Assembly (NCBI GenBank): GCA_964036045.1
Contig: OZ038379.1
Coordinates: forward strand, 13,578,001 to 13,642,000
Length of the DNA: 64,000 nucleotides
DNA from: Eutreptiella sp. 'Long Island Sound 2002'
Lineage: Eukaryota > Protista > Euglenida
Direction: 5' to 3'
Below are positions 1 through 53,894 of this stretch, in pieces. The notes under the pieces are model-generated. The model was given only the letters and a program-made list of their open reading frames with translations, did not search any database and was not told the DNA's origin. Made by a program: the position numbers and the translations under genes. The first letter of the stretch is position 1. Each line of letters starts with the position of its first letter.

Positions 1-867
1 AGCTCTGCACACCAACATTTTTTATGCTTTCATTTGTCACCGTGACAAGCTCTGCGCACCAACGTTTTTTATGCTGCGTTATTTCGTCTTCTGCCGCAAT
101 TTCTGTGCCCCACAGTGTGCGTGTACGGTGGTACTACGGTCGGTGGTGGGGGACCGTCACTTGGTGACCGTCCCCCAGGGGGTGGCGGGGGGCCGTCTTT
201 TCTGGGATGGGGAAGGACGGGGGGGGGGGGGGGGTACTAGAAACCCATCCTTTGTGATACTTTGGGCATCAGTGTTGTTTGACGGCAGGCTTTGATGCTG
301 CTTCCACATTGGGGATATGCCATTTTCACCCAGTTTCACCCATTTCCACCACTTTCACACATTTTGTGCTCATTTCCACCACATCCACTCCTTTCTAGGT
401 TTATTTCTCCCCGTCATGGGTACCCCAAGGAGGCAAGTGTTATGTAGCCATATTGACACATATTTTGTTGGTCCTTTCACTGCTCATGAAACAGGGATTC
501 TAACGAGAAGATGAAGAGTATGTGGCATGTTAGACATCTTACGTGCGATTTTGATGTTAGCTGTCTGACACAATTGTGTGATATTGTGTTAGTACACAAG
601 TTCAGCTACAAGGGATTCCGGCACACACAAGTTTCAGTGGAGTAAAGCCCATCACATTTGGAAGCAACATTTTTCAGTGAAAGAAAACAGAACAAAATTT
701 TCCGTGTCAGATTGCAATTTTTGCACCCCTCGGCTACTTTGTACCCCCAAGGCTCGGGTAGTTGGGGTCGCCTAATTTCAAGGGCGTTTGGAAGGGGTGT
801 GCCTGGGGGCTCTTGGGGGGAAATCTAGTCTAAAAGTAGCGCGGTGCGCACAGCACAAGGATTCCCC
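1..867. mobile_element. Right part of a short non-autonomous G-ended element (copy of 57443-58648)
   Basis: Ends in GCGCGGTGCGCACAGCACAAGGATTCCCC, matching the right ends at 54747 and 58648. Confidence 0.6.
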
Positions 868-1889
868 AAAAAAATCATGTCCAGGAGCTAGAGTGGGATA
901 CAATACACACCGTATTGTACAGTACGGTACCAATAAGTTTGTATGGATATCAAGAGACCCTTAATGGTCACTTACAAATGGGGACACATCCGGTGTCAGC
1001 TGCTCCATTTGTCATGCGTTTGCAGCTGAATTCAATAGGTGTCATCCAGACATGTCCCGAAAGTAGCAACATCAACCCAGAGACCACTAGGAAGTAATAG
1101 CGCCTATCCATGTTCGCAACATAACAGCTCCCATCCATTACAGTTTGTGTGGTGTTACCATTGGCAGGTGCTTTACAAAGTGCACATGGTGCAAATATTG
1201 CCCCACCTGTCAGATTGGGCGAAACACAAAGCAGCAATTGTCAAGAGGCCAGCCCTTTGAGCCCCTGTTAGCAGGGGAGCAGAAAAGATGCTCTATGGAC
1301 TGCCTGCCCCTTGAGCCCCCTGTCCGGGCGGGGGGGGGGGGGGGCTCCCGCAGCCCAGATGGGCTGTTTGCGCAACAGGAGCGGGAGCCCACCAGGGGCA
1401 GACCAGCCGTGAGGGGGAAAGGGACATATGGTGGACGGTCGGGACAACGCGTGGAGGAGCAGGGCACTTGGGCCTCACGCACACAGAACCACAGCGAGGC
1501 AGGTTATGGACAGCCTGTGGACAGAGGCGTGTGGACAGCAAAAACAGTCAAACGACCCCGGCAACAACTAGCATATCCTCAATACCCCGGGAATCCCTCA
1601 GGCATGGCTTACTCCCGGTAGCTTCCAACCCCCCTCCCGTGGCATCTGCTCCTGATGATATTCCTCAGGGAGGCAGCCCAGGTCACGTTCTGGTTCAACC
1701 CAAGTGAGTGATCGTGGCCGGCAACTGCAACCACCACCATGAACGAAGGCTGTGCCTTGGGCACATCCCCTTAGTCATGTTCCGGGCCTGCTTCCCAGGC
1801 CCATCCTATGTGCCACCCTCCATTGGCTGCCGCACTGTAGCTGGTGGCTGGGCATGGCCCTACTCGAGGCAACGGTGCAGTGTCTGTCG

Positions 1890-1930
1890 CTCCTCTGTTT
1901 CCCAGTGTCTATTTTTTCTTCGGCAGCAAG
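1890..1930 (+). promoter_or_regulatory. Pyrimidine tract plus AG just upstream of the importin ATG (possible cis- or trans-splice acceptor)
   Basis: CTCTGTTTCCCAGTGTCTATTTTTTCTTCGGCAG and CAAG lie 7-11 nt before ATG 1937. Function is inferred only. Confidence 0.3.
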
Positions 1931-1936
1931 GCCCCC

Positions 1937-2083
1937 ATGGATCCCCAAGCGCTGTACCGGACTCTTGAGGGGACGTTTAATATCGACAACAACGTCCGTC
2001 AACAAGCAGAAGCACAACTGAAGCAGGCGGAATCTCACCCCGGATATTTGGGGATCATTTTCCAAGCAGCTTGTGCTGACCAG
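1937..2083 (+). CDS. Importin-7/8 (Nmd5/Sxm1)-like karyopherin, exon 1 (start of importin-beta N-terminal domain)
   Basis: MDPQALYRTLEGTFNIDNNVRQQAEAQLKQAESHPGYLGIIFQAACADQ resembles the importin-7 N-terminus (MDP...R..AE.QL). Donor CAG|GTCCGC at 2084, phase 0. Confidence 0.85.
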
Positions 2084-4178
2084 GTCCGCAACGGCTCCCC
2101 TCTGCAGTGTTTCTTGGCTCTCCCCGATCGCCTTCCCCTACAGCTCTGCCCCTGCATGAACCCCGCCCCCCACCCACCTACCCATGACCCAGCCACCAGA
2201 CTTGCTGCTGGTGCTGTGGCGTGAGTGGGGAGAGCTGAGTGGAACTGAGTCAGACATTCAATGTGTGCGGACCCTACTGAGTGCTGGACAGGCCCCGGGC
2301 GAATCCTAGTGAGTACAGATTGCTGGTCTGGACACTGACAGCAAATGTGCTGCCCAACTCTTGCGCAAGCACGGCCTTGTCGAAGCGCGGCGAGCCGCTC
2401 CTGATCGTTGCTTTTTTGACCGCTAGTTTGCTGGTTGAGGGGAAAAGATGACACGGATGTGAGCCCATGGTAGTGGGGGAGGGGGGCGTCCTGTGCTTAG
2501 CCAAGGCTGCTATCCCATGATGACACGCGGGTGTTGTGCGGTACACAGGCCCAAACTGAACGTCGACCTGCCGCCGCCCTAATCCACTCCACCTTTGAGC
2601 AGAAGTGGGCCGCACTCCAAGGCATAGTGCCGCTGAGAGCAGCCACAACTCGTACATGCTAGGCATATCTGGTTCTTGTTGATGCCCCTCTGCATGTTTT
2701 TGTGTGGGGGATTAGTATTCCGGCCGCTCCCGGATCATAACTGCAGAAGATATGCACGCTGCTCCGCGTCATGCCTTTTGTGCTTGAGGTGCAGTTGCTT
2801 CGAAGTTTGAGCATCGTCTTTTTTCACGCAGCAATTGGTTTCCATGTTGATCAGGCGCTGCAAGGAATGCAAACGGAGCATAGCAGGTTTTCCATGCCGC
2901 GACCACCGACTACTGCCGCCGTCCGGGCCACCACGGCCGGTTGTGCGTGTCAGGGGACTGCGGGAGGCGGTTGTGGTGTGTGGGTGTATGTGGTGCATAG
3001 CAAGCGTAACGAAACTCCCTAGCACCAAACTGGGGGCTGGCGATCGTTTGCTGAAAGCAGCCCCCGGAGTTGTGCTGCGTTCTCTATTTCTTCATGAATC
3101 AATGGCTGGGATTGCCTGACGCGGGGGCATTCAGTCTTATCAGAATCAACCAGTTGTGCAGGTGCCTCAGTAGCATCAATGGTGCTCCGCTTTATGGTGC
3201 TTCGTTGGGGGTGTGGACTGCAACGGGACGGAGCAGCTGCCTTTCGAGAACCCCCCCCCCCCCCAACCACCACCACCACCCCACCCTTCCAGACCCCCAA
3301 ACCTGCACCCATGGGGCAGCAGATTTGTCGCCTGCACAGTGGCACCGTCACGGCTCGCTTCCTGCTTTGCGAGGTTCATGTACCCCCCGTGCAACGACCA
3401 CCTTGTCCAACGACCACCCGCTGGTCCAACAGTGAACCATTGCCGGTCGTTGCGTGAAGGGGGGGCGCGTATTGTGTCTGTCAGAATTTCCCGCTTTTGC
3501 CCCCTTCCTTACGGTGGGCGGGCAACGGTGCTTTGCCCCCACATCTGTTGAGTCAAAAACGCTCAGAATTCCAGTCTTCCAGAAAACACCCAGACCTCTT
3601 CACCTCCCCACCTCACGCCACGATCGCATACTGCGGACGGGTCCAGCGCGTGGACAGCACAACGCTCGTGCGCGACACCTTCACGTGGTGTATTGTACTC
3701 CAGGAACCGGTGACCAACGCATTGTCCTGCGATGTGATGTGCGCGGAGCCGTCCGACCGACGTGGAATGCACCCGAAGGACTGATGGCTGACAAGTGCGG
3801 GGGATATTCAGTCACTCAGCACCGACAACTGAGCAGGGCGCTCCTCTCTCACCCCGTCTTTTCTTTTTTCTTCTTTGTTTGCGCCAAGAAGCGCCCTAAG
3901 GAGCGGCCAAAACAACTGCTCAACCGGCGTCGGTTGCCATCCAGCCGCCTTCGGATACCCTGCAACTGCCGTCAGAGCTGCCGCCCAAGCGCCCGAAGAT
4001 GACTGGGCGTATGTTCAGCCACCCCCCCCCCCCCCCCGGCCGCCTTTTAGGGAATTAGGGAGGGCCCAGCCATTGAGCCCCCTCACGCCGCAAGTGTATG
4101 GCCCAGAACACCACTGAGACGCCCCCAATGCCCCCCCTCTTGCTTCCCCTGTACTTTGCTGGCCCATCGTCACCACAG

Positions 4179-4796
4179 GTCAATGCCGACATCCGTCTGG
4201 CTGCCGCCCTCCGCTTCAAGAACAGGCTGCGCAACGAGGACTGCGACGAGGACTGGAAGTCCCCGGTCCAAGAAGATGAGGAGGTGGTGGTGAAGAAGGC
4301 GTTGAGCGCCGTCATCAAGGCCCCTTCCGAAGTCAGGAGCGTGCTCGTGGAAGGGCTGCGGAGGATCTTGGAGTACGAATTCCTTTCCTGGGAAGGCCTG
4401 GTGACGGAAGTGATGCAAGGCCTGAACATGCACAAGATTACCGGGGCCCTGTCCGTACTTCGGGTGCTCTGCAAGCGATTCGAGTACAACAGTGCCGCCC
4501 CATTGTCACCCCAAAATTCCAATTCCAATTCCCTTCCACACCTGACGTCCAACGGCAGCCTACCGCCAATGCCCCCGGGCCCAGTGGCCCACCTGCCCGT
4601 GCCCCGCCCCCGGCGTGCCATCGACGTGCGGCTGGCTCCACCTCCTGCACCGCTGTCTGCGGCGAGAGGCCTTGTGCTGCCGCCCCCCGCACCGCCGGCT
4701 GCTGTGCCTGGCTCGGGCCTCCGAAGCAGCGCTATGCCGGACGGCCGATTGCCAGGTTTCGAGCCCATGCGGGTATGCGCCTCGGCTCTGTGCTGA
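4179..4796 (+). CDS. Importin-7/8-like exon 2. Homology ends near RFEY (~4490); the frame continues as a Pro-rich tail to TGA, or a donor at 4492 is used.
   Basis: Acceptor CACAG|GTC at 4178/4179 joins in frame to give ADQ|VNADIRLAAALRFKN...W...AP.EVRS.L.E.L..I...F..W.GL...GALSVLRVLCKRFEY, the importin-7/8 pattern. Confidence 0.8.
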   Translation, partial: VNADIRLAAALRFKNRLRNEDCDEDWKSPVQEDEEVVVKKALSAVIKAPSEVRSVLVEGLRRILEYEFLSWEGLVTEVMQGLNMHKITGALSVLRVLCKRFEYNSAAPLSPQNSNSNSLPHLTSNGSLPPMPPGPVAHLPVPRPRRAIDVRLAPPPAPLSAARGLVLPPPAPPAAVPGSGLRSSAMPDGRLPGFEPMRVCASALC

Positions 4797-4914
4797 CTGA
4801 CGATTGGGGGGCTGTGGCTGGGGTTAGTGCGTACGCTCGGTCTGGGGCTCTAGCACGGGCAGATGCTGGCTGGGGCTGGTGAGAGCCTCCATACGTGGCT
4901 AGATCTTCTGCTTT

Positions 4915-6919
4915 TCGGTACGTAATCTGCAGCGCCAGGCTGCTTGGGGTTTGGCTAATGACGGGCCGAGGGCGGGCAACAACGCCAACAGTGGAGTGCA
5001 CCCGAGGGGAGGGTGGCCCATGGCGATTGGAGGCTATTGGACAGTGGCAGGAGAGCGAACTGCCTTGATTCGGGGAATGACTGTGTCTTGGTGATCAACG
5101 GCGTCAGCAGGGATCCCATGGCAGTTGGAGGCTGACTGCTCTTGGTTGCAGTTTGTGCCTGGTGCGGTTTGATGGGACTGGGCAGCGGTTTGGATGGCGT
5201 TGTTGCATGGGTTCCGGACACCCATGATGCCCCCCCCCCCCCCCTGTTGCAGCAGCATTTCCTTGTCTAAGCACACCGATTTATCTCGCTGTTTTCTACC
5301 GCAGCTTCTGTATTGGCATGCCAGCTTTTTTTTACACAACTTGGCCTCATTCAGTTTTCTGTTCCAAATTGCTCTTGTACTCTTTGCGACTCCCTTTTTG
5401 GTGATCCTGAATGCACACGACATGGGTGCTGTAAAGCAGCAAGGCAACACGTGGTTATGGTACCATGCCTGCTCCCTGCATGTTTTTGTACTGTATGGTA
5501 CTGAATTGTACGTAAATGTGCACCACGTGCATGGCGCCCTGCATTGAATTGTACTGACACTGCACTATGTATGCCCTGCCCACTTCAAGCTCTCTGAACA
5601 GTGCACACTGTTCCCTGTGCGCATGTCATGTTTTCGGGATTTTGTGGGGGAGATATTAGGCCCCAATTCAGTGCTGTGATGGTGTAGCAGCACCATTTTG
5701 AGTATCCTGAATCCGTGGTGAATGTATTAGCGAAAAGTGATTTTAATCTGAAAAAAAACCCGGCCCACCTTTCGGTGCACTGTTGACACAGTGGCACCCT
5801 CGTAGACTATATTTTTGCTCAGTTTTTCGACATTTGCTCAACTGCTTTACACCCGATGCATTGCCTCTTGATCCATTGTGGCGGTGTGTAGTGATGGGAA
5901 GGCATGTCGCATGGGCATTGATTCACCAAGCAGCAGCAAGCATGTGCCAGATGCTAAAAAGGCAGAACTCAGCAGGGAGGAATGATGCATGACTTGGCTA
6001 CTTGACTACTTGACACGTGCAATGGAACCCCACAAACCTTGAGTAAACAAACTCAATGGCAGCCAAAAAGCGGTGCAGCCAGTTGAGGGTTGGAAAGCCT
6101 GTCAAAAGCAGTATTTCTGAAACTGTTTTGGGTCCAGAGACCACCAGGAAATATCAGCATCCATTTGGGGCCCAGTAGGACATATCAGCACCCATCCAGA
6201 GACCACCAGGAAATATCAGCCTCCATCCAGAGGCCTCCAAGAATAACAACATCACACTCCTCACTCCCAAATTTTCCCTTCGTTCCTAGGAGGAGGTCGT
6301 TTTGGGAATGTAGGGCACCTATGCTATGGTGGGTGCCATATGCATCAAAAGCAGCCAAATTGACCGTGTCAGGTCCATTTTCGGCCCACAACGGGACACA
6401 AACAGGCCAATGATGGTCATCACAGCCAAGAGACATAGCCTTGAACAGCCATCCTTTCAGCTATTCCAAGTGGTCTCCATTCACTTCGTGATGCGAATTG
6501 GCAACGCATTTTGCAACCCCCCATGCCCCTGATCTCAGCATGGGCCAGGGAGCCAGCTCACCTGGGTGACTCAATGCCCTTGGGGCAAGTTGTTGCCCGT
6601 GAGGTGAATCAAAGCTCCTAGTATGCGTCAACACCCCAGCGGTGAGTTAGTGTCCAGGTGTCATCTGTAATCTTGAGATCTCGGGTCTTTCACCTCTAGC
6701 AGACAGCACTGTGCTTGCATGATGCAAACACTGGGTCTCCCCCCCCTCTGGGCAGGCAGTCTGGGGCTTAGTGACGTGAACGGAGCAAAAAGGAAAACAG
6801 TGCACAAAGGATTGTATTCTCTGGCACCTTTCTCCCAATGCAGCCCCCTCGCGTGTATACTGACAGTCATGCGCACGTTGACGCCCACCTCACGCTTAGG
6901 TTTGCCCGCTTCGCCAGGA
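4915..6919 (+). repeat. Ectopic copy of the HIRA intron 16664-18645 with 3 nt of upstream and 20 nt of downstream exon
   Basis: Matches 16661-18665 at offset 11746, with one SNP seen (ctaatg/ctgatg). GT at 4918 and AG at 6898-6899 are retained. Confidence 0.95.
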
Positions 6920-7299
6920 ACGAGCGAGCAGTGCATCGAAAAGACCGCAATCGAGCGAGAGGAAAACGTTGCCGAAGTGTCCCGACAGGCGGAGCAGGGA
7001 AGAACAGGTGCGTTGCTGCGGCGAAGGGTGAGGTTGAGCCTCGGGTTTGCTGGGTACTACGGTACGGACCTCCAGTGCGGTACGTGGGGACAAGGTCCGG
7101 GGGCCCGCCACACTACAAGGAAGAGGCTCAAATGGGGGAGAGGCCCCGCCATGATGCTTAAGCCGGTTTCAGGTCCACAGGGAGACCAGCATCCCCCATC
7201 GCAGCCCCCTAAACAGGGGTGTCCCGGGGGGTGAGCCAGTAGGCACCATGGGGAAGGTCATGCGCGCCGGATTGAGCCGCGTCTCCTCCTCTTCCTCCT

Positions 7300-10200
7300 C
7301 GTACATTGGGACCCTCCCCTTGGGCACTGTACGTATCGTACATTGGGACCCCCCCCTTGGACACTGTCCATATTGTACAGCGGGACCCCCCCCTTGGGCA
7401 GGCACTGTACATATTGTACAGCGGGACGCCCCCCTTGGGCACTGTACATATGTTACATTGGGACCCTCCCCTTAGGCACTGTACATATCGTACATTGGGA
7501 CCCCCCCCCTTGGGCACTGTACATATCGTACATTGGGACCCCCCCCCTTGGGCACTGTAGATACCTTACATTGGGACCCCCCCCCCTTGGGCACTGTACA
7601 TATCTTACATTGGGACCCTCCCCTTAGGCACTGTACATATCGTACATTGGGACCCCCCCCCCTTGGGCACTGTAGATATCTTACATTGGGACCCCCCCCC
7701 CCCTTGGGCACTGTACATATCTTACATTGGGACCCCCCCCCCTTGGGCACTGTACATATCGTACATTGGGATCCTCCCCTTGGGCACTGTACATATCGTA
7801 CATTGGGACCCCCCCCCCTTGGGCAGTGTACATATTGTACATTGGCACCCTCCCCTTGGGCACTGTACATATTGTACGTTTGGACTCTCCCCTTGGGCAC
7901 TGTACATATGGTACATTGGGACCCCACCCCTTGGGCACTGTACATATCGTACATTGGGACCCCCCCCCCCTTGGGCAATGTACATATTGTACATTGGGAC
8001 CCTCCTCTTCGGCACTGTACATATCATACGTGGGGACTCTCCCCTTGGGCAATGTACATATGGTACATTGGGACCCCACCCCTTGGGCACTGTACATATC
8101 GTACATTGGGACCCCACCCCTTGGGCACTGTACATATCGTACATTGGGACCCCCCCCCCCCTTGGGCAATGTACATATTGTCCATTGGGACCCTCATCTT
8201 GGGCACTGTACATATCGCGCATTGGGACCCTCCCCTTGGGCACTGTACATATTGTACATTGGGACCGTCCACTTGGGCACCGTACATATCGTACATCGGG
8301 ACCCTCCCCCTTTGGCAGTGTACATATCGTACATTGGGACCCTCCTCTTAGGCACTGTACATATTGTACATTGGGACCCCCCCGCCTTGGGCGCTATACA
8401 TATGGTACATCGGGAGCCCCTCCTTGGGTATTGTACATATCGTACATTGGGACCCTCCCCTTGGGCACTGTATATATATCGCACATTGGGACCCCCCCCT
8501 TGGGCACCGTACATATCGTACATTCGGACCCCCCCCCCTTGGGCACTGTACATATCGTACATTGGGACCCCCCCCTTGGGCACCGTACACATCGTACATT
8601 CGGACCCCCCCCCTTTGGGCACTGTACATATCGTACATTGGGACCCCCCCCTTGGACACTGTACATATCGTACATTGGGACCCCCCCCCTTGGGCACTGT
8701 ACATATCGTACATTGGGACCCCCCCTTTCGTGCACTGTACATATCGTACATGCCCGCCCCCCCTTGGGCGCTGTACATATCGTACATTTGCACCCTCCCC
8801 TTCGGCACTGTACATATCTTACATTGGGACCCCCCCCTTGGGCACTGTACATGTCATACATTGGGACCCCCGCCCTTGGGCACTGTCCATATCGTACATT
8901 GGGACCCTCCCCTTGAGAATTGTACGTATTGTACATTGGGACCCCCCCTTTTGTGCGCTGTACATATTGTACATGCCCCCCTCCCCTTGGGCGCTGTACA
9001 TATCGTACATTGGGACCCTCCCCTTGGGCACTGTACATGTCATACATTGGGATCCCCCCTTGGGCACTGTACATATTGTACATTGGGACCCTTCCCCTTG
9101 GGCACTGTACATATCGTACATTGGGACCCCCCCCCTTGGGCACTGTAGATATTGTACATTGGGACCCTCCCCTTGGGCACTGTACATATGGTACATTAGG
9201 ACCCCCCTTTTTCGGCACTGTACATATGGTACATGCCCCTCTCCCTTGGGCGCTGTACATATCCTACATTGGGACCCTCCCTTTGCGCACTGTACATGTC
9301 ATACATCGGGACCGTCCCCTTGGGCACTGTACATATTGTACATTGGGACCCTCCCCTCAGGCACGGTACATATCGTACGTTGGGAACCCACCCCTTGGGC
9401 AGTGTACGCATTGTGCATCAGGAATCTCCCCCTTTGGCAGTGTACATGTCGTACGTAGGGAAACCCCCTCTTGGGCACTGTACATATCGTACATTGGGAC
9501 CCTCCCCTTGCGCGATGTACACATTGTACATTGGGACCCTCCCCCTTGGCTATTGTACGTATCGTACATTGGGACCCCCCCCTTGGGCACTGTACATATC
9601 GTACATTGGGACCCCCCCTTTTGGGCACTGTACATATTGTACATGCCCCGCCCCCGTTGGGCATTGTACATATCGTACATTGGGACCCTCCCCTTGGGCA
9701 CTGTACATATTGTACACCCGGACGCCACACCTTGGGCACTGTACATATCGTACATTGCCCCCCCCCCTTTTGCGCACTGTACACATCGTACATTGGCCCC
9801 CCCCCCTAATGGGCACTGTACATATTGTACATTGGGACCCTTGCCCTGTTGGGCACTGTACATATCGTACATTGGGACCCCCCCTTTTGGGCACTGTACA
9901 TATCGTACATTGGAACTCTCCCCTTGGGCACTGTACATATCGTACATTGGGACCCCCCCCCCTTGGGCACTGTACATATCGTACATTGGGACCCCCCCCC
10001 CTTGGGCACTGTACATATCGTACATTGGGACCCTTGCCCTGTTGGGCACTGTACATATCGTACATTGGGACCCCCCCTTCTGGGCATTGTACATATCGTA
10101 CATTGGAACTCTCCCCTTGGGCACTGTACTTATCGTACATTGGGACCCCCCCCTCTTGGGCACAGTACATATTGTACATTGGGACCCCCCCCCTTGGGCA

Positions 10201-12668
10201 CTGTACATATTGTACCTTGGGACCCTCCCCTTGGGCACTGTACATATTGTACATTGGGACCCTCCCCTTGGGCACCATACATATCGTACATTGGGACCCT
10301 CCCCTTGGGCACTGTACATATTGTACATTGGGACCCTCCTCATGGGCCATATACATATCTTACATAGGCACCCCCCCCCTTGGGCACTGTACATATTGTA
10401 CCTTGGGACCCTCTTCTTGGGCACTGTACATATTGTACATTGGGACCCTCCCCTTGGGCACTGTACATATCGTACATTGGGACCCTCCCCTTGGGCACTG
10501 TACACATTGTACATTGGGACCCTCCCCTTGGGCACTGTACACATTGTACATTGGGACCCTCCCCTTGGGCACTGTACATATTGGACATTGGGACCCTCCC
10601 CTTGGGCACTGTATATATTGTACATTGGGACCCTCCTCTTAGGCACTGTACATATCGTACATTGGGACCCCCCCCCCTTGGGCAATGTACATATCGTACA
10701 TTGGGACCCTCCCCTTGGGCACTGTACATATCGTACATCGGGACCCTCCCCTTGGGTACTGTACATATCGTACATTGGGACCCTCCCCTTGGGCAGTGTA
10801 CATATTGTACATTGGGACCCTCTCCTTGGGCACTGTACATATTGTACATTGGGACCTCTCCCCTTGGGCAATGTACATATTGTACATTGGGACTCTCCCC
10901 TTGGGCACTGTAGATATCTTACATTGGGACCCCCCCCCCTTGGGCACTGTACATATCTTACATTGGGACCCTCCCCTTAGGCACTGTACATATCGTACAT
11001 TGGGACCCCCCCCCCTTGGGCACTGTAGATATCTTACATTGGCCCCCCCCCCTTGGGCACTGTACATATCTTACATTGGGACCCCCCCCCCTTGGGCACT
11101 GTACATATCGTACATTGGGACCCCCCCCCCCTTGGGCACTGTACATATCGTACATTGGGACCCCCCCCCCTTGGGCACTGTACATATGGTACATTGGGAC
11201 CCTCCCCTTGGGCACTGTACATATCGTACGTTTGGACTCTCCCCTTGGGCACTGTACATATGGTACATTGGGACCCCACCCCTTGGGCACTGTACATATC
11301 GTACATTGGGACCCTCCCCTTGGGCACTGTACATATCGTACATTGGGACCCACCCCCTTGGGCACTGTACATATCGTACATTGGGACCACCTCCCCTTGG
11401 GCAATGTACATATTGTACATTGGGACCCTCCTCTTGGGCACTGTACATATCATACGTGGGGACTCTCCCCTTGGGCAATGTACATATGGTACATTGGGAC
11501 CCCACCCCTTGGGCACTGTACATATCGTACATTGGGACCCCCCCCCTTGGGCACTGTACATATCGTACATTGGGACCCCCCCCCCCCTTGGGCAATGTAC
11601 ATATTGTCCATTAGGACACTCATCTTGGGCACTGTACATATCGCGCATTGGGACCCTCCCCTTGGGCACTGTACATATTGTACATTGGGACCGTCCACTT
11701 GGGCACCGTACATATCGTACATCGGGACCCTCCCCTTTTGGCAATGTACATATCGTACATTGGGACCCTCCCCTGGGGCAATGTACATGTCGTACATTGG
11801 GATCCTCCCCTTGGGCACTGTACATATCGTACATTGGGACCCTTCCCCTTTGGCAGTGTACATATTGTACATTGGGACCCTCCCCTGGGGCACTGTACAT
11901 ATCGTACATTGGGATCCTCCCCTTGGGCACTGTACATATTGTACATTGGGACCGTCCGCTTGGGCACTGTACATATCGTACATTGGGACCCTCCCCCTTT
12001 GGCAGTGTACATATTGTACATTGGGACCCTCCCCTGGGGCACTGTATATATCGTACATTGGGATCCTCCCCTTGGGCACTGTACATATCATACATTGGGA
12101 CCCTGCCCCTTTGGCAGTGTACATATTGTACATTGGGACCCTCCCCTGGGTCACTGTACATATCGTACATTGGGACCGTCCACTTGGGCAATGTACATAT
12201 CGTACATTGGGACCCTCCCCCTTGGGCACTGTACATATCGTACATTGGGACCCTCCCCTTGGGCAATGTACATATTGTACATTGGGACCCCCCCGCCTTG
12301 GGCGCTATACATATCGTACATCGGGAGCCCCTCCTTGGGTATTGTACATATCGTACATTGGGACCCTCCCCTTGGGCACTGTATATATATCGCACATTGG
12401 GACCCCCCCCTTGGGCACCGTACACATCGTACATTCGGACCCCCCCCCTTTGGGCACTGTACATATCGTACATTGGGACCCCCCCCTTGGACACTGTACA
12501 TATCGTACATTGGGACCCTCCCCCTTGGGCACTGTACATATCGTACATTGGGACCCCCCCTTTCGTGCACTGTACATATCGTACATGCCCGCCCCCCCTT
12601 GGGCGCTGTACATATCGTACATTTGCACCCTCCCCTTCGGCACTGTACATATCTTACATTGGGACCCC
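7300..12668. repeat. Minisatellite/satellite array of roughly 145 copies of a ~37-bp unit (CATTGGGACCCTCCCCTTGGGCACTGTACATATCGTA)
   Basis: Continuous tandem units with variable C-run length and recurring variants. No unique spacers. Confidence 0.98.
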
Positions 12669-13056
12669 TTCCCCTTCTCCCTCCCCTCTTGTGTCAAACA
12701 CCTATGGCTGTGGGGCCCAGCATATGAGGTCCCTGTTGTACAGTCCAACTTCCCCTCCCTCTCCACCGTTGCATGGTCCAAAGGTTCTACAGTCTGGCAC
12801 CTGCTTGGAAGTCAAGAGGCACAGCGATCAGTCGATGAAACGCAAATCCTTAGAATTCACCTGATTCTCCAAGAGGCGGGGCACATTTCACTGTCCATAC
12901 CACGCATTCCTGAAGCCCCCCTCGTTCTGCGAGCACTCACTATCCAGATGCAAGCCGCACTCGACAACAAAAATCTGGGGCGGTGGGCAGAACTAATGCA
13001 GGCCAGGAACCGATATCTACCGATATCTACCCTTCCTGTCCCACCCTGCACTGGCA

Positions 13057-13485
13057 ATGGCCAGGAGACTGAGTCATGTACACCGCTGGTTCATTTCCCT
13101 GACGCCCCCCCGCAATGTCATCTACCTGGTGTACAATATATGGCTTCAGGTGGTGTACATTGGCCTCACCACAGGGGCCCTGGTTAGCCGGTTGAGGAAA
13201 CACATGACTGACAGTCTGGCTGACGTGGATTGTGCCACCTTACACAAACACATGGCGAAAACGGACCTCTCAGGCTGGGGAATTCTTCCACTGCAATGGG
13301 TCGAGGACGACTGGCACGCGAGTGTGCGTGAACGACACTGGTGGTGGATTTTCAGGCGCTGGGCTTGCAACGACGTCCCACCAGGAATTAGTACCCAGGG
13401 TGAGGGATCCAAATCTCGAGGTTGGCTTAACCAAAGAGTGCTGGCGGCTCTGCAGGGTATCCGTGATGCGACTGGCCACGAGTGA
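13057..13485 (+). pseudogene. GIY-YIG endonuclease domain of the Penelope-like element
   Basis: VIYLVYNIWLQVVYIGLTTGALVSRLRKH...VRERHW carries the GIY-YIG Y/Y-G/R/H/E signature. Confidence 0.85.
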
Positions 13486-15658
13486 AGTTTCTTCAGTCAG
13501 AACTCCAGGACCTGGCTAACCGTCTCTCTATCCCATTGTATGTCCTTGGTCACATGACCGTACCCAATCTAACCCCAAATCAAAATGCGGCAATTCACAG
13601 AGTTATACGCGCAATGGTGAAATCATGCAACATTGCAGCGTGGGAAAAACAAGCGCTACACAAGGCCGTACGAGTGGTACGCTCCAACCCAGTCACAGTG
13701 CGAAGTCTTTTTGAAAAACAGAGTAGGAAAGGAGACCGAGAGGCCCAAACACCACAATGCTCATGCGCCAGCATCACATCAGAGCACGGCCACGTCATTG
13801 AAATTGAAGGCCACAAAGCGCTTATCCCTGTGTACGTTCAGGGCCTCGATGCAACTACCCTCCGCCCCAATGACTCCCTACCACTAAAGGGCACTAAAGT
13901 CAGAGCGCGCCTTTTCAAGGACATTACTAAAATAGCAGGACAGATCGGGGCAGAAGTGCCTAACCTCCAGCACATGCTACCCTCAACCCTGTGGTGTGAG
14001 TCAGGGTCCACTGTGCGCCACGTGGAGCAGCAAGCAGCAGCCATCTCTGCCTCCCACTACGTACGAATCGTGGACAAGGGGGTGGGGGTCATGTGGGGAT
14101 TTTGCCGTCAGTGGATGTGGGATATACTCGAGGAATTCCTGATCCAAGAAGGGTATACCAGATGCACCCAGTCCCAACAGCACATCACAGCACGGATACT
14201 GAAGATCATACAGTCCAACAGCTAGGACAATGACCCAGTTGGGCGCATCGCCTCCCTGTACCTCATCGGCAAAGCAAAAAGTCTGGTTAAACAGAAATGG
14301 CTCTGGAGACCCATCGCCGCACTCCCGAAACCCCTCTTACCAAAAAAGGACCTCACAATCGCAGCCAGAGCCATGACCACATTTCTGAAACTGGTGGCAG
14401 AGGAGACCCCTGGAAACTTCATGGTCCACCCAGTTAATCGCGTGGCTGACTGGTTTCATTGGTTGCATCAGTTGGTTGCTCTTATATTGTTGAACTGGAC
14501 TGCAAAGACCAGTTCAACCACGTACCCCCCAGTTGTGTGGAGTCACACATGGCCGAGTCCAGCAAGTGGCTCGCCAAGCGGCGTTGCTGGCGCATGAAAG
14601 ACATCTGCTGGAGTGTCCACAGAGACAGTAAAAAGTTGGACAGGGCAGGGCAGGGGGCCTCAGGAAAATTTTGGTACATCACACACGGGGACCTCAGCAA
14701 CAAAATAAATTTCGAGCTACAAAACAACAACTATGTGACCGCGGCAGGGTCCCTGTGGCAAAGGACAGGGTGTATTCCCATGGGCGGGTCATTCTCCGCA
14801 CAGGCGGCGGACCTGCACTGCCAGTGGGGGGTGTACATGAACAGGGCGCGCTTCAGAGACCTTGGGGAACTCCGCATCACTGACACAGGTTTCATATACT
14901 GGGATACCCCCTGGGGAGCACTCACACTGTGCCAATTTCGAGACAACATTCTTATGGCCACAGCCTTTGCCGACACCCCAGCCATCAAAATAGTTAAACG
15001 TGTGTGCCACCTCCTACAGCGATGCTGGAACCTGCGGGTGCTGTGTCCATGTGATACACCGTGTACCCAATCCTGTCTCCAATCCTCCACGACAGCTATG
15101 GGTTTCTGCATGGTATGTTCAACGGATGGGGAACCCACGGCGTACACACATCCGAGTTCGCTGGATAGTGCATGGGATCTAAAAATGGGCCCCCCACTGA
15201 TGACGCCGACCCACGCCTCCCAACAGTACCTGCGGACAGTCCTCACAGGCGTTTTATGTAACTCCCGCCAATGGTGTCGAACCCCCCTTGCACAGCTCTT
15301 GACGGTGACAGCGTGGGGCCAAGTGTCAATTAAATCGGGCTACAGTCCCAGAGCCCTCAGGCGGGCCATGCACGCTGCGATCATCAGGGGCCTGGCAGCC
15401 TCAGACCACCAACCACAGTTCGTGGTGCGATTCATGCACCACATATCCGAGCTCCTACCCCTTCCACGATGCTGTGCTATCCACAGAGTGCTCCAATGGG
15501 TGAAACGACATGGCCAGTGGGCAGGAGGGGCATATGCCACATGGGTGCTCCCGAAACACCTGGCACAAGTGGGTATCACAGGAGACTGGAGCCACGACTA
15601 CACCCCCCTCCACGATCATTGGGTCTCGGTAAAACAACCGGGACATGTGTGTGTGTGA
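13482..15658 (+). pseudogene. Linker and reverse transcriptase of the Penelope-like element (interrupted)
   Basis: PLE-type RT motifs spread over two frames with one premature stop. The catalytic motif reads FRDN. Confidence 0.85.
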
Positions 15659-16011
15659 TCGCGCGGTTACGTGTGGTCCATGACCCTGCCTGCATGGCCT
15701 CCCCTGTCTCCCCAGTCTCCCCTGTATGCCTACCTCCCCTCCAAAGACAGTCAATCCAGGGGCATGTAAGTGATGCTGCAAGGTACACAATGTCCTCCCC
15801 TCCTCAGACCTAAAGGTAGTGACGACAGGGAACACTGCAGTGACTCCATGAGAACAGTGGATGAGAAACAATGTGCCCTGTCCCGTTACCTTTCAGAAAG
15901 GCGCCTAGCCTCCATGACAATTTTGTAATTGTGGCCTGACGAGTCGTTTTGATCAGTGCCTGCCTGTCTGCGATCAACAGTGGGTTGGGTTCTCTTGATC
16001 ACTGTCACGAA

Positions 16012-16038
16012 GTGTGTGTGTGTGTGTGTGTGTGTGTG
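16012..16038. repeat. (GT)n microsatellite
   Basis: Directly visible. Confidence 0.9.
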
Positions 16039-16107
16039 CCTCATCTGATCCCCATGGCCATTTTTTGTGTGTGTGTGTGTGTGGTTGGGTGGTTGCACCT
16101 AACACAG

Positions 16108-16191
16108 GTTGATATTTTGGGCAGTCATGAACACGAACTCCTCCAAGGGGTATTTCCTGGTCTGTTGTACAGTGCAGAACTGAATACGGGA
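16108..16191 (+). CDS. Possible upstream HIRA exon (VDILGSHEHELLQGVFPGLLYSAELNTG)
   Basis: Acceptor ACACAG|GTT and donor GGA|GTAGGT give phase 0/0, compatible with the exon at 16577. Similarity to the post-WD40 region of HIRA is weak. Confidence 0.35.
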
Positions 16192-16576
16192 GTAGGTGAG
16201 GGCACAAGCACATGCTGCGTCGCGCTGAACCCACTGTCCAGAACTGCATTTGCTCTTTCTCTACCAACAGACCGAAAGACGTCTAGGACAGCTCTGCTGT
16301 TCCTGAGGAGTTTTCTTTCACCGCTTTTCTTGCTCTGTTCTTGTTTGCGGTTCTCGTTGTGTGTGTGCCTCATGTCAACCACCAGCCACATGTTTGACAC
16401 CTGCCGGCACCTGCCAAAAATTTTGCCGACACCTGCCGACACCTGCCATGGCAGGTGTTAGCTTCAGGTATGGTTCTGCCTGTACGTTCCTTTACCCCGC
16501 CTCCCCAAAACCTCTCCCTTCACCCTGAAGGACCCCCGCATTTCCCGCACTCAATCCAGCCACATCCTTGTCACAG

Positions 16577-16663
16577 GTCCTGACAGACGCTGAGTTCAAC
16601 AGCGAACAGACGACCCCTGATGGCCGCAAGCGCCAGCGTATCCAGCCCATCAACCACTTGTCG
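16577..16663 (+). CDS. HIRA: HIRA exon carrying the ASF1-binding B-domain
   Basis: VLTDAEFNSEQTTPDGRKRQRIQPINHLS resembles the HIRA B motif (T.DG++RI.P). Acceptor CACAG and donor GTACGT, phase 0/0. Confidence 0.75.
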
Positions 16664-18665
16664 GTACGTAATCTGCAGCGCCAGGCTGCTTGGGGTTTGG
16701 CTGATGACGGGCCGAGGGCGGGCAACAACGCCAACAGTGGAGTGCACCCGAGGGGAGGGTGGCCCATGGCGATTGGAGGCTATTGGACAGTGGCAGGAGA
16801 GCGAACTGCCTTGATTCGGGGAATGACTGTGTCTTGGTGATCAACGGCGTCAGCAGGGATCCCATGGCAGTTGGAGGCTGACTGCTCTTGGTTGCAGTTT
16901 GTGCCTGGTGCGGTTTGATGGGACTGGGCAGCGGTTTGGATGGCGTTGTTGCATGGGTTCCGGACACCCATGATGCCCCCCCCCCCCCCCTGTTGCAGCA
17001 GCATTTCCTTGTCTAAGCACACCGATTTATCTCGCTGTTTTCTACCGCAGCTTCTGTATTGGCATGCCAGCTTTTTTTTACACAACTTGGCCTCATTCAG
17101 TTTTCTGTTCCAAATTGCTCTTGTACTCTTTGCGACTCCCTTTTTGGTGATCCTGAATGCACACGACATGGGTGCTGTAAAGCAGCAAGGCAACACGTGG
17201 TTATGGTACCATGCCTGCTCCCTGCATGTTTTTGTACTGTATGGTACTGAATTGTACGTAAATGTGCACCACGTGCATGGCGCCCTGCATTGAATTGTAC
17301 TGACACTGCACTATGTATGCCCTGCCCACTTCAAGCTCTCTGAACAGTGCACACTGTTCCCTGTGCGCATGTCATGTTTTCGGGATTTTGTGGGGGAGAT
17401 ATTAGGCCCCAATTCAGTGCTGTGATGGTGTAGCAGCACCATTTTGAGTATCCTGAATCCGTGGTGAATGTATTAGCGAAAAGTGATTTTAATCTGAAAA
17501 AAAACCCGGCCCACCTTTCGGTGCACTGTTGACACAGTGGCACCCTCGTAGACTATATTTTTGCTCAGTTTTTCGACATTTGCTCAACTGCTTTACACCC
17601 GATGCATTGCCTCTTGATCCATTGTGGCGGTGTGTAGTGATGGGAAGGCATGTCGCATGGGCATTGATTCACCAAGCAGCAGCAAGCATGTGCCAGATGC
17701 TAAAAAGGCAGAACTCAGCAGGGAGGAATGATGCATGACTTGGCTACTTGACTACTTGACACGTGCAATGGAACCCCACAAACCTTGAGTAAACAAACTC
17801 AATGGCAGCCAAAAAGCGGTGCAGCCAGTTGAGGGTTGGAAAGCCTGTCAAAAGCAGTATTTCTGAAACTGTTTTGGGTCCAGAGACCACCAGGAAATAT
17901 CAGCATCCATTTGGGGCCCAGTAGGACATATCAGCACCCATCCAGAGACCACCAGGAAATATCAGCCTCCATCCAGAGGCCTCCAAGAATAACAACATCA
18001 CACTCCTCACTCCCAAATTTTCCCTTCGTTCCTAGGAGGAGGTCGTTTTGGGAATGTAGGGCACCTATGCTATGGTGGGTGCCATATGCATCAAAAGCAG
18101 CCAAATTGACCGTGTCAGGTCCATTTTCGGCCCACAACGGGACACAAACAGGCCAATGATGGTCATCACAGCCAAGAGACATAGCCTTGAACAGCCATCC
18201 TTTCAGCTATTCCAAGTGGTCTCCATTCACTTCGTGATGCGAATTGGCAACGCATTTTGCAACCCCCCATGCCCCTGATCTCAGCATGGGCCAGGGAGCC
18301 AGCTCACCTGGGTGACTCAATGCCCTTGGGGCAAGTTGTTGCCCGTGAGGTGAATCAAAGCTCCTAGTATGCGTCAACACCCCAGCGGTGAGTTAGTGTC
18401 CAGGTGTCATCTGTAATCTTGAGATCTCGGGTCTTTCACCTCTAGCAGACAGCACTGTGCTTGCATGATGCAAACACTGGGTCTCCCCCCCCTCTGGGCA
18501 GGCAGTCTGGGGCTTAGTGACGTGAACGGAGCAAAAAGGAAAACAGTGCACAAAGGATTGTATTCTCTGGCACCTTTCTCCCAATGCAGCCCCCTCGCGT
18601 GTATACTGACAGTCATGCGCACGTTGACGCCCACCTCACGCTTAGGTTTGCCCGCTTCGCCAGGA
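16661..18665 (+). repeat. Source copy of the duplicated HIRA intron (intron 16664-18645)
   Basis: Flanked by in-frame HIRA exons. Duplicated at 4915-6919 and, partially, at 62685-64000. Confidence 0.9.
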
Positions 18666-18793
18666 CCCTGGAGAGTTCCCAGTGGTAATGGAAGCGATCC
18701 CCAGAGTAGGTTGCACAACCCTCAAGCAAAAGCAAGGGGATTTCGTGGTGTGGACCGCTACAATTCCTTGCGGAGAGGTCACATTGATGGCAG
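18646..18793 (+). CDS. HIRA: HIRA exon, start of the C-terminal Hira domain
   Basis: VCPLRQDPGEFPVVMEAIPRVGCTTLKQKQGDFVVWTATIPCGEVTLMA(G). Acceptor TTAG and donor G|GTATGG (phase 1) join to GG-AAT at 21087, giving the W...TLMAGN pattern. Confidence 0.7.
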
Positions 18794-21086
18794 GTATGGC
18801 CAATGTAAGGGAAAGCTGAAAGTGTGGTCAGGACATTCTTTCAGGGGTCAGTTTACATTGTGTCTGATGGTGTCTGCTAAAGTGTGCATTACCTGCAATC
18901 CATGTGGTGATGCCTGTGATGTTTGTGTGAGGCTGCAGTGAGGGTTGGGCAAAGCTTGGGTGAGGCGATCCAGCACATGCTCCTCTACCCCAACTCCACC
19001 TTTCTGGATATTTTTGAAAGGTACCGCACCGCCGGCACCTAAAATTATTTTTAGTGACGAATGCGCAGGGCCTGGAAATCATAGATCTGAGCCCAGTATT
19101 GTAGTTTTGTTTTCATCTAAAATGTTTGCCCCCTGTATATTTTGCGTTTTGAATTATGGTTTCTGTTTGGTTGCTTGATGCAGTTCCTGGGCCCACGCGT
19201 GTTGTCTGGTTAACTTCAGGATGCCACATGCATACAAAACAGATGTGCTTGCTTCCAAGACCATGCGTGTGCTATGGTTGTGGCGAGTGGAAAATGGTTT
19301 CGGGGCGTATGAGCCCCCCGAAACCCCGTTGGAGGGGGTGGGGGGCTTGGAAACTTATGTCAGGTGGCTTTGGGGCACCTCACACCCGGGGAAGTCATGA
19401 CCTATGCTGCAGCATTCTTTGTATGACATCTCTGATGCCGAGTGTTTCTGCTTGGATTGTGCTGAAATTGCATCGATGCCTCAAGTTGTGTGCGCCATCT
19501 TAGATATCCCCACTGATGCCACTGCAGGCTGCAGCTCAGCCAAGGACTAGAACAGGGTTAAGTTGTAGCTCAGGCTGCACATTGAAGGATGATGCTGCAA
19601 TGGGAGGCTTGGTTGCGACGGTCACTGAGCACCTGGAAATGACTAGCGCCAACGTGTCCTTTGACATAACAACCAGCACCAAAGCTACATGTGTCAAGGT
19701 TGGCCATGGCAGAAGAGCTCCATCTCGGGCGGAGGGGGGGGTTCATATACCCTAAGCAGTTTGCCCCATCCATTGACATTGTACAACACGATGTCGTAAA
19801 CGGAGAACAGCGTCCGCGTTGCCGTGCTGGTGTCGTCGTCATCATCGACGCCACTTTTTGTATCGGTCTGCCGCAAACCTCCTGCAGCATCGTCTTCGGC
19901 ACAACGTATCACAAGAGGAGGGGGAAACAACCAGGCGTAAAGCGCAGCGGTCCACACACCCATATGGATAGCATGTTATGATCGTATTTGCGATCTTTGG
20001 TGACATATCACTCACTTGTAAGCATGCTTGTCTGCCGGCTGACACTGCATATCCAGCAGTTTGGAGGTGCTTGACAACCCCATTTGAAGCTATTGTGATC
20101 CCCCCCCCCCCCCCGCCGCCCCTGCCCCCCCCCCCCCGCCCCACGCACAAGTTTTGAAAGTCATTTCATGGTAACCAATGCGATGCGTGCTACCGGGGCC
20201 TAGCGCGCATCGATACTGGTGTTTGGGTCATTCTGAGGGTTGCAAACCTCAAAAGTGAGGGGTTGCAGGTGGACCATGTGCCATCAGAATTGGATTTCAA
20301 GCCACGCAGCCCAAGATATGGTCCAATCTTGGTTTGGGGCTAGTGGTGGGCAAAACACACCGTTTTTGCACCATTGGGGCCATTTTCAGGGCAATGGTAC
20401 AGAGTTACAAAGGTGAAATAACCTTCCTTGACATGACCAAAGGAAGCCGCTTCGGTAGAGTCAAATAGGGTGCGAAACTCATAAGGAGGGTGCATCTCCT
20501 TTTAATGTCCATAGGCCTATGTACAGAGGTCTGTGGACTTTGAAAGTAAACGTGGAAGACACATAAGGAGGGTGGAAAGCAGCTTTCCCTGTGGTAGTTA
20601 CATGTAGACCGGGTCAGTTGCCTCCTCCCCTGTGGCGGCAGCCCAACCTGCTTTCCAATAATCAATAATTGGAGGGTAATTTGGCGGCCACCGTGCCACA
20701 TCACACCCCAAGTTTTTAGAGTGAAAAAAAAAGAAATTTACCGAAGGACATGTTTCTTTGGGCCATGTTTTGTACACAAACTGTTCGGTACCACCCCCAC
20801 CCCACCCCACGCCCGAAAACACCCTCTTCCAGCACAGGCCTGGCTGTCCGCGCCTGTCTATGAGTACCTGTCCGTGCACATGCATTCCAAAAATCAAATT
20901 CTGTCCCTGTAATTCTGTGCTGTGTTACTGGCGGTGCTGGCAGCTGAATGGAGAATCCAACAATCAAAAGCAGCGCACCCTCGTCACCGTTCCTCCGCGT
21001 TGATATGAGGCAGATTTGTTGTGGATGGTAGACTAAAAATCGGCGAAGGGAATCTCGGAATGGTTGCCCGACTCGTTCCATCCCAG

Positions 21087-21280
21087 GGAATGCAAAGCTC
21101 TTTGTGGCAGTCGCCTGCTCTGACAACCTATTCATCTTGTCTGCGCGTGGCGGGCGGCTTCTGCTGCCATGCATCCATTTATCGGCTCCCATCCGTTATA
21201 TGACCTCCGACACTTGGGACAAGCTGTTGATTGTCACGGATGCTGAATGCATCTGCTGGGACATTTCCAGTTTCAAGAAG
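21087..21280 (+). CDS. HIRA: HIRA exon, Hira domain
   Basis: GNAKLFVAVACSDNLFILSARGGRLLLPCIHLSAPIRYM...LLIVTDAECICWDISSFKK matches HIRA/Hir1 (VAC...S..GRRLL..I.L...I...W D). Donor AAG|GTGCCT. Confidence 0.85.
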
Positions 21281-21971
21281 GTGCCTCTGCCCGCATTGAT
21301 GGATGGATGGGGTTCTTTGTTGCTGGTGTCACTCTGTGACTGTGTTTGGCTCTGTGTAGCTGTGTGTAGCTGTGTGTGGCTGTGTGTAGCTGTGTTTGGC
21401 TCAGTATGGCTTTGTGTGTCTTTGGGTGGCTCAGTTTGAGTGTGGTCTGTTGGTGATGTGTGTGGATCTGTGCGGCTGTGTTTGGCGCTGTGTGGCTCTC
21501 TGTGGTTCTCCCCAGGAGTTGGTCCATCGATTTTGGGCTATCAACGTTTCACATCGTGCAGTGCAGTTAAGGGATGGCAAGGGTTGACACGAGATGCAGA
21601 TGGCTGGGCGTTTGGTTGTCTGCACATCTGGGGCCTCTACAAAGTACAACGGGGCATAGGGAAATTCATCCAAACCTTCAGGAATCAAGACCATGGGCAA
21701 AACCTGTCAAATTAGGGCCATGACACTGATTCCTACTGTGGGCATGATTTGCTAATTGTAGACACTGCTTGCATGTCACAGAAACGAAGAAAAAATATTG
21801 AAGAAGAAGGCCGAAGGCCCCGTTGTCAAAAAAAACAAGGGGTTCGTACGAGGGTTGACCCCTGTGCGTGCTTGCAGTTGTATGCACTTTGGAGATGCTT
21901 ACAACCAGAGAAGACACGATATGTTCATTGTAGACATTGCCTTGATATGACCTGTGACCCTCGTCCCTCAG

Positions 21972-53864: not shown

Positions 53865-53868
<4 letters not shown>

Positions 53869-53894
<26 letters not shown>
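53869..53894. repeat. (TG)n microsatellite
   Basis: Directly visible. Confidence 0.9.

Follow-up and report, generated by a model that had tools for sequence, protein, structure and literature searches.

Young chimeric genes in which a recruited part evolves rapidly are well known, and jingwei and Sdic of Drosophila are examples. A different setting for local change is provided by duplicated genes that undergo gene conversion, in which a peak of divergence can be found (Innan 2003; Teshima & Innan 2008; reviewed in PMC3924837); the opsins are a described case (PMC3213168). Interlocus conversion also occurs within human segmental duplications, in which SNVs are reported to be 60% higher (PMC10172114). 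Clusters of changes furthermore arise through breakpoint mutagenesis and template switching of the MMBIR or Pol-theta type (PMC5453318), and localized in-frame variation of binding-type protein segments is known from DGR systems. A gene of Eutreptiella resembles each of these systems in part and differs from each of them in other respects.

The gene lies in a window of 64,000 nt, which is the whole stretch of DNA that was analyzed, and it was compared with the loci L001-L004 from a second assembly (ENA ERZ25074135). Self-comparison of the window revealed a long direct repeat, 1-6229 (copy A) versus 57783-64000 (copy B), which is 99.4% identical, indels included. The sequence-only reading had described an importin with a hypervariable exon. 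The location in the N-terminal HEAT-repeat region was borne out, but instead of a plain importin the gene proved to be a chimera, and an expressed one, of an importin-beta-type N-terminus (exons 1 and 2) and a HIRA C-terminus. It sits in a multi-copy repeat with a unit of about 58 kb. The repeat and the exons are located as follows:

1-6229, + strand: start of repeat unit A, 99.4% identical to copy B
57783-64000, + strand: start of repeat unit B, which extends past the window end and is 99.93% identical to ENA contig L004
1937-2083, + strand: exon 1, importin N-terminus of 49 codons, identical to the parent gene; copy in unit B at 59707-59853; N-terminus of the protein P0154
4179-4772, + strand: exon 2 in unit A, importin-derived up to 4489 and derived from the HIRA locus from 4486-4490 onward; present in an RNA contig
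61949-62542, + strand: exon 2 in unit B, the fusion-gene counterpart
6900-7007, + strand: exon 3 of the fusion mRNA, in frame; positions 652-762 of L005
18645-22879 (18645-18794, 21084-21292 and 21970-22879), + strand: downstream HIRA-type exons of the same mRNA, from the mapping of L005 and L006; Pfam Hira in P0009 and P0154

Transcripts and proteins both reveal the chimeric structure. In an RNA contig of run X6 with a depth of 80, exon 1 is spliced to 4179 and exon 2 continues to 6906; the intron at the 4772/6900 splice has GT...AG ends. Two JGI metatranscriptome contigs (L005 and L006) represent the fusion mRNA and contain 4179-4772, 6900-7007, 18645-18794, 21084-21292 and 21970-22879. A representative search with the parent exon-2 ORF recovered P0009, a protein of 455 aa that carries the B version of the variable patch. 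The 90% cluster of P0009 includes P0154 (Eutreptiella braarudii, MMETSP0809, 512 aa), in which Pfam places IBN_N at the N-terminus (PF03810, 24.5 bits at a cut-off of 21) and Hira at the C-terminus. Exon 2 alone gave a weak Cse1 match (E = 0.34). These transcripts and proteins place the gene in a marine euglenid of the Eutreptiella type.

Both parents of the fusion persist. The importin parent is present in full length in L001, with Cse1 and TPR_IPO11 domains downstream, and its mRNA is represented by L007-L009; the HIRA-side source of 4486-6919 is L003, at an identity of 99.8%. The two parts meet at a microhomology, ACAA. The parent ORF matched 285 proteins at E<=1e-10, including P0004, P0156 and P0157, which are about 1,000 aa long and have importin-type Pfam domains, and the identity to the Euglena gracilis ortholog is 64%. 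The k-mer depths in run X6 were 80 for the patch, 89 for 4361-4489, 79 for the continuation into the fusion and 21 for the continuation into the importin, so that fusion transcripts outnumber those of the parent in this run.

Other searches had a smaller yield. A protein search with the 232-aa exon-2 ORF returned three ENA ORFs only and a 104-aa query had no match, while exact look-up of the A and B ORFs of both strands in the protein collection found none of them. The exon had no match in JGI metagenome contigs with a gapped pattern or with a 32-nt conserved anchor, and Rfam had no match on 1-7300. An antisense ORF (4055-4768, 237 aa) was rejected as a gene; it is absent from the protein collection and is taken as a chance ORF of GC-rich DNA.

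L004 is a B-type unit, and the coverage in its contig name is 258x, compared with 23-45x for the other (single-copy) contigs. Judged by contig-name coverage alone, this suggests that L004 is a collapsed repeat of roughly 6-10 units. As a separate observation, the segment 4911-6919 has a shorter third copy at 16657-18665.

Alignment of A and B with MAFFT and BLAST yielded 20 substitutions and 4 indels (1, 2, 13 and 1 bp). Thirteen of the substitutions fall inside 4272-4381, which corresponds to 62042-62151 in B, and the remaining 6.1 kb or so contain only seven (at 52, 413, 2473, 2998, 3954, 4665 and 5513). The divergence is thus 12% in the patch and 0.11% in the flanks. When substitutions were placed uniformly in 200,000 trials, the maximum per 110-bp window was 7, whereas 13 were observed. 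The cluster is real and far beyond chance. The realignment recovered the same 13 in-frame, sharply localized differences that had been noticed from the sequence alone, and also the 11 altered codons, each with a changed residue as listed; the low background held as well, though at 7 differences and not about 8.

The A/B difference is not an assembly error, because each version is present in independent public data. Words of 31 nt that are specific for A occur in an independent run of 2013, X18 (9 of 13 sampled words), and B is found in several sources, so that the suspicion of a chimeric assembly or of sequencing errors is not upheld. Logan contigs of four runs (X1, X2, X9 and X6), which carry three organism labels and cover DNA and RNA, contain B-type letters only; such contigs lose rare variants, and the absence of A there is no evidence against A. 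The window, L004, L005 and L006 share one and the same B exon, and L001 and three environmental mRNA contigs likewise agree fully in the parent exon. Beyond A, B and the parent version, a single additional SNP (4360) was found across the samples. Between these sources the versions are discrete and stable, and there is no sign of continuing diversification.

The comparison with the parent gene showed that the patch forms the center of a broader zone of difference between both copies and the parent:

4244-4425, + strand: wider zone in copy A; both copies differ from parent exon 2, with about 26 shared substituted letters and in-frame indels of +3, -3, -3 and -9
62014-62195, + strand: wider diverged zone in copy B, the counterpart of 4244-4425
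4272-4381, + strand: patch in copy A, the rare, early-branching version; parent-like at 9 of 13 sites, with A-specific words in run X18
62042-62151, + strand: patch in copy B, the common, more derived version; about 9 private changes; identical in L004, L005 and L006

Upstream of the zone, A and B are 99.2-99.8% (about 99.6%) identical to the parent gene over 4.2 kb, which include the promoter, exon 1, intron 1 and the first 65 nt of exon 2. The divergence between fusion and parent locus is graded, with 1-3% in the distal part, 0.2-0.8% in the proximal part and 13% in the patch; set against flanks at 0.2-0.8%, the patch was also put at 13-19%. Downstream, the 64 bp between zone and joint (4426-4489) are identical to the parent with the exception of one synonymous site. 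The block of parent homology has a length of about 8.6 kb and ends 60 bp past the patch. Within the zone, the 13 nt next to the block 4246-4258 served as the template from which it was copied, and tandem multi-base changes are numerous, including GA>AC twice.

The parent state is ancestral; its residues and a DFPxRWP motif are common to P0004 of E. gracilis and other importins; the motif is absent from A and B. Polarized in this way, both copies are altered, as had been surmised from their residues, with about 4 private changes in A and about 9 in B. The private letters of A are at 4318, 4329, 4347 and 4379, and 4318 is changed in both A and B, which leaves 3 changes that are confined to A. 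Nine parent-like sites in A are interleaved with sites in the B state (4281, 4287, 4300-4302, 4317 and 4339, counted as 6). The pattern is tree-like and free of homoplasy, and one of the polarized changes is synonymous (AAA>AAG at 4331 in B). B is the common derived version, and an intermediate, B', which is the B type with a G at 4360, occurs in a contig of run X2 and in MMETSP proteins.

The flanks follow the same polarity. At the nearest markers (3954, 4665 and 5513) A is ancestral and all B-type copies are derived, and 4665 and 5513 lie outside the parent homology; the four remoter differences are private singletons. The polarity of these markers shows that A branched off early, as a version of a block that spans 1.5 kb or more, and that it is not a B unit patched from the parent.

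Two further sequences combine parent-like and derived parts. The unit L002 has B-like flanks, which differ by about 0.07% outside the patch, and a parent-like patch that continues 330 bp further into the parent exon. It also shows a slipped duplication of 36 nt along with several small deletions, and the B-type sequence resumes at 4380 via the microhomology CTCCC. The second case is P0158, the protein of an MMETSP0810 transcript, in which a B' patch is joined to an importin body without other differences from the parent. The depths in run X6 fit an assembly chimera that was formed via the shared 64 nt; alternatively, the parent gene of that strain may really have been converted.

The comparison of A and B yielded 12 non-synonymous changes and 1 synonymous change, which is not different from neutral expectation (Nei-Gojobori, P=0.15). 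Compared with the parent, pN and pS were 0.096 and 0.091 for A and 0.117 and 0.104 for B, resulting in a dN/dS of about 1. Synonymous change is itself raised in the patch, with a pS of 0.09-0.10 compared with 0.2-0.8% in the intron, and the excess of synonymous and third-position change was significant for the stem (P<0.001) and for A versus B (P=0.03). The earlier tally of codons with a changed residue is correct, but it does not carry over to mutations polarized by the parent, of which 1 in 13 is synonymous. Likewise, the skew toward codon positions 1 and 2 exists (11 of 13, in a split of 5/6/2), but it is not significant (P=0.37). An absence of synonymous changes is weak evidence in genes that are rich in GC3.

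The residues that changed between A and B are not random with respect to the fold. Nine of 18 polar residues changed, compared with 2 of 19 hydrophobic residues (P=0.013), and the four indels of the zone are all multiples of three and lie where an AF2 model (pLDDT 87) predicts loops or helix breaks. Selection for frame and fold is visible; as to selection that would maintain the difference itself, the polar bias shows no more than a preserved fold.

Two explanations survive, differential homogenization of the repeat and a local mutation hot spot, and we favor the former. We hold tentatively that the patch is a peak of divergence inside duplicates that are otherwise kept alike by concerted evolution. 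The patch would then represent HEAT repeats 2-3, the core that a young chimeric gene took over from importin and that has diverged fast. The importin role of the segment may have been lost, as the missing DFPxRWP motif would indicate, and selection would have retained the reading frame and the helical fold alone. Changes would have been acquired stepwise, from the parent to an ancestor of A and B, then to A on one branch and to B' and B on the other. The repeat units would have been homogenized with each other, and their 5' region would have taken part in gene conversion with the parent gene. With flanks homogenized in this way, old differences would appear as a narrow peak, A would be a surviving early-branching version, and B, the version seen in cultures and in the sea, would have spread through the repeat.

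The anatomy of the gene, its expression, the polarity of the changes and the stability of the discrete versions are observed. We infer that the flanks are young through homogenization, rather than the patch being hypermutated. Linked markers at 3954, 4665 and 5513, together with private SNPs farther away, form the shoulders that are expected of a divergence peak. The raised synonymous change and a dN/dS of about 1 fit a greater age of the patch, and not selection alone. The graded divergence from the parent, the stable versions and the surviving intermediates also fit a divergence peak, and the bias toward polar residues and the indels in loops, as a fold-preserving pattern, are counted in its favor. 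Conversion between parent and fusion gene probably occurs, to judge by L002, with its parent-derived patch in a B-type unit, and by the graded divergence from the parent locus, in a set of only 4-5 sequences.

Some observations are more difficult to reconcile with a divergence peak. Homogenization between A and B would need to stop within about 300 bp on each side of the patch. The segment 4426-4489 is almost identical to the parent, so that strong purifying selection would have to act on the respective helix. The changes on the stem include complex templated replacements that resemble repair products. Furthermore, the excess of the patch is about 30-150 fold on all branches (the stem, A, the B stem and the parent-like copy in L002), which a hot spot would explain more directly.

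The described cases of divergence peaks share several features with this locus, namely duplicates that are nearly identical including their introns, a short diverged stretch in an exon, and shoulders of linked flank markers; L002 may add conversion between the copies. However, the patch is located at the edge of the block of parent homology, and the peak also exists between two units of one repeat. In the opsins, the peak involves few known functional sites under demonstrated selection, whereas dN/dS is about 1 in the fusion patch.

The locus also invites comparison with young chimeric genes of the jingwei and Sdic type. It likewise arose by a recent 5'/3' fusion, is expressed and tandemly amplified, and contains a fast-changing recruited domain. 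It differs from them in that the patch has no significant dN/dS excess and in that the flanks are far more parent-like than the changed segment. The gene is thus a clean natural example of a new chimeric gene that has been amplified, has RNA levels above those of its parent and has had its recruited domain remodeled stepwise, with at least three intermediate states still present (the parent-like L002, A and B'). The case is instructive, but not categorically new in duplicate-gene evolution; it illustrates that concerted evolution can make an old difference resemble hypermutation.

The second surviving explanation, a local hot spot of mutation associated with recombination or repair, is a serious rival, though on balance unlikely. 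The patch occupies the final 60-250 bp of the homology block of about 8.6 kb, beside the microhomology joint, where breaks or ectopic pairing would recur. Error-prone repair with template switching would add substitutions and small indels in each lineage, and only outcomes that break the frame or the fold would be purged. Such a process would account for the excess of patch over flank on all four branches, for the raised synonymous and third-position change, and for a dN/dS near 1. Its expected products are also present: the templated block at 4246-4258, many tandem multi-base changes, the fusion joint at ACAA, and the event in L002, in which a parent tract, a slipped duplication, small deletions and the CTCCC microhomology coincide at the patch.

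Five results weigh against the hot spot. The parent and B versions are identical in the genome, in culture and in the environment, which argues against fast mutation now. The changes at the tips of A and B are simple and biased toward polar residues, and a filter acting on whole bursts would rarely yield such a pattern. No hairpin, cruciform or other unusual DNA structure was predicted at the patch (z = -0.57). A search of both strands for local templates of the derived letters (k>=11 in the window and the loci, k>=8 within 700 bp) yielded only 4246-4258. Lastly, mutagenesis known to be associated with breakpoints or duplications is far below 50-100 fold (PMC10172114).

The same division is seen in comparison with breakpoint mutagenesis and template-switch clusters of the MMBIR or Pol-theta type (PMC5453318). 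Microhomology at the joints of the fusion and of L002, the templated block, the slipped duplication and the tandem changes near the joints are in agreement with them. The density in the patch (13-19%) and the recurrence on several branches are far above reported events, and for the simple point changes that make up most of the A/B differences the search returned no template.

A stronger version of the hot-spot explanation is doubtful. In it, a eukaryotic exon would harbor a lasting, site-specific hot spot of 190 bp that changes at 30-150x the rate of its flanks on four independent branches. Ectopic pairing and breakage would recur at the homology edge, error-prone repair would follow, and the process would reinforce itself ("divergence begets divergence") while the HEAT-repeat surface of the amplified fusion gene was remodeled. 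If the hot-spot explanation were true, recombination-associated mutagenesis at a homology boundary could readily be studied at this locus.

Positive diversifying selection on an exposed HEAT-repeat surface, with no difference in age or mutation rate and with a sweep of B through the repeat, is improbable. The ratio of 12:1 between A and B, the concentration of changes on polar helix residues and loops with retained hydrophobic positions, the majority status of B wherever samples exist, and the predominance of the fusion mRNA over the parent mRNA in run X6 are what it would lead one to expect. However, the A/B contrast is not significant and pN is close to pS relative to the parent, so that the strong positive selection proposed earlier is not supported. 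Selection can also not raise synonymous and third-position change, and a dN about 50x the flank rate would be needed on the rare A lineage as well. In addition, multi-nucleotide events are known to mimic the signal of positive selection (PMC10336034).

Roughly as improbable are one or several short tracts of interlocus conversion from diverged exon copies outside the loci that were read, such as older fusion units or pseudogene fragments. SNV clusters in nearly identical duplications arise most commonly by conversion, and the coverage suggests about 6-10 repeat units, two or three of which are sampled here. The parent was not the donor, as the interleaved sites and the 4 private letters of A show; any other donor must carry all the changes and indels specific for A and B, and nested events would all have to be confined to the same 190 bp. 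The DNA contigs of X1, X2 and X9, in which rare variants are dropped, contained no further version that is at least 85% alike, and the searches of the protein collection found no other version. The pool of divergent paralogs that had been suggested earlier has yielded no donor, and the sole known paralog, the parent, gives a tree-like pattern and no tract.

Two simpler forms of conversion were rejected. A single tract from the parent does not agree with 9 parent-like sites in A that are interleaved with B-state sites and 4 private sites, and the polarity signal extends beyond the homology of that donor, to 4665 and 5513. That the parent back-converted A, with mismatch repair acting in patches, is less parsimonious. 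Compared with the conversion clusters in segmental duplications (PMC10172114), the locus is similar in its dense cluster within large, nearly identical duplications and in a third paralog that mostly matches one copy; it is dissimilar in that the patch has no contiguous tract, both copies have private letters, and the flank polarity lies outside the homology. A RIP-like or CpG-deamination spectrum was also rejected, since the G>A changes include only one at a CpG and the spectrum mixes transitions with transversions.

An artefact of assembly or polishing in A, for example a consensus of parent and B-type reads, would be in line with the lack of A letters in the contigs of X1, X2, X9 and X6 and with the parent-like state at 9 of 13 sites, but it is highly implausible in view of the A-specific words in X18, 4 letters that occur in neither parent nor B, the retention of all A/B-specific indels in A, and the ancestral HIRA-side markers 4665 and 5513, for which the parent gene cannot be the source.

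That a programmed system, DGR-like or otherwise dedicated, targets the exon for hypermutation is equally remote: extreme localization, in-frame variation on the surface of a repeat protein and a retroelement 8 kb downstream are shared with DGR systems, whereas adenine specificity, a template repeat, a DGR-type reverse transcriptase or accessory gene and a C-type-lectin or Ig fold as target are not, DGR products do not resemble the indels and templated replacements found here, the organism is eukaryotic, and the versions are fixed and identical between samples instead of being regenerated. The polarized changes started from A in 5 cases, from G in 4 and from C or T in 4, and changes between A and G occurred in both directions. 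Neither the 64-kb window nor some 125 kb of related loci contained a template copy of the patch, and k-mers of at least 12 nt matched there at chance level only. The adenine mutagenesis that had been considered earlier is thus rejected, and two of the counterpoints raised with it, the lack of a third template copy in the window and a broken neighboring RT, were both confirmed; the idea of a eukaryotic diversifier of the DGR type, attractive but mistaken, can be set aside. The ORFs of 13057-16458 contain no reverse-transcriptase domain and only a sub-threshold GIY-YIG match, and the neighboring retroelement fits a 5'-truncated Penelope-like remnant.

The left end of the diverged zone in exon 2 of the importin/HIRA fusion gene has a source close by, namely the neighboring 13 nt (parent 4234-4246, the parent being the full-length importin gene). 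This left block is a single templated replacement, which explains five apparent "substitutions" together with a 3-nt insertion. The features of the fusion-gene region, in window coordinates, are as follows.

13-bp indel, 1785-1797: 140 bp upstream of the fusion-gene start codon, missing in unit B at 59567
Left block of the diverged zone, 4246-4258 (unit A) and 62016-62028 (unit B): direct copy of the adjoining 13 nt
Intra-unit duplicate, 4911-6919 and 16657-18665: 99.9% identical
Satellite, 7299-12676: 5.4 kb with a period of about 37 bp, intronic in the fusion gene, which is expressed
Inverted repeat, 23513-23735 and 23767-23989: 223-nt arms, 96% complementary, with 31 nt between them

Parent-derived sequence was also found in a fusion unit on L002, a contig of the second assembly (ENA ctg10605), of which L002:10050-10600 corresponds to window 4179-4489. 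In this unit, the patch is replaced by parent exon 2 and 330 bp of additional parent exon sequence. Within the inserted tract, 36 nt are duplicated by slippage, and there are small deletions (of 3, 3, 5, 1, and 1 nt). The tract returns to B-type sequence at 4380, where the microhomology is CTCCC, and the unit no longer reads in frame into HIRA. From its sequence, the tract looks like the product of microhomology-mediated, error-prone repair.

Along the sequence that the fusion unit shares with the parent locus, divergence is graded. The distal part (window 53653-55900 versus L001:1441-4250, the parent contig) is 1-3% diverged, whereas divergence in the proximal 6 kb is only 0.2-0.8%, a step that is consistent with a later conversion of the proximal part. 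The B' patch, the B type with G at 4360, is present in a full-length importin, the MMETSP0810 transcript protein P0158, which was compared with window 61949-62259 and is 100% identical to the parent importin outside the patch. Either P0158 is a transcript-assembly chimera, joined via the shared 64 nt at 4426-4489, or the parent gene of strain CCMP1594 has really undergone conversion.

The intra-unit duplicate comprises a HIRA intron and the beginning of the next exon. In the fusion gene, it makes up intron 2 in its 3′ half and exon 3 in its first 20 nt. The fusion mRNA jumps from 7007 to exons past 16.5 kb. Next to the satellite, on its downstream side, is a Penelope-like remnant, in which 13057-13482 gives a weak GIY-YIG match.

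The inverted repeat lies in a stretch of 64% G+C, shortly 3′ of the last mapped exon of the fusion gene. The metatranscriptome contig L005 does not stop where the fusion mRNA ends (22879) but runs on, as L005:2211-5124, into window 26362-29273, which lies 3.5 kb farther downstream in the DNA. The transcript could be polycistronic or a read-through product, or the contig could be chimeric. In the upstream flank, the 13 bp are kept in unit A and in both L001 and L002, but unit B of the window has a deletion there, which might influence the 5′-UTR or promoter of unit B.
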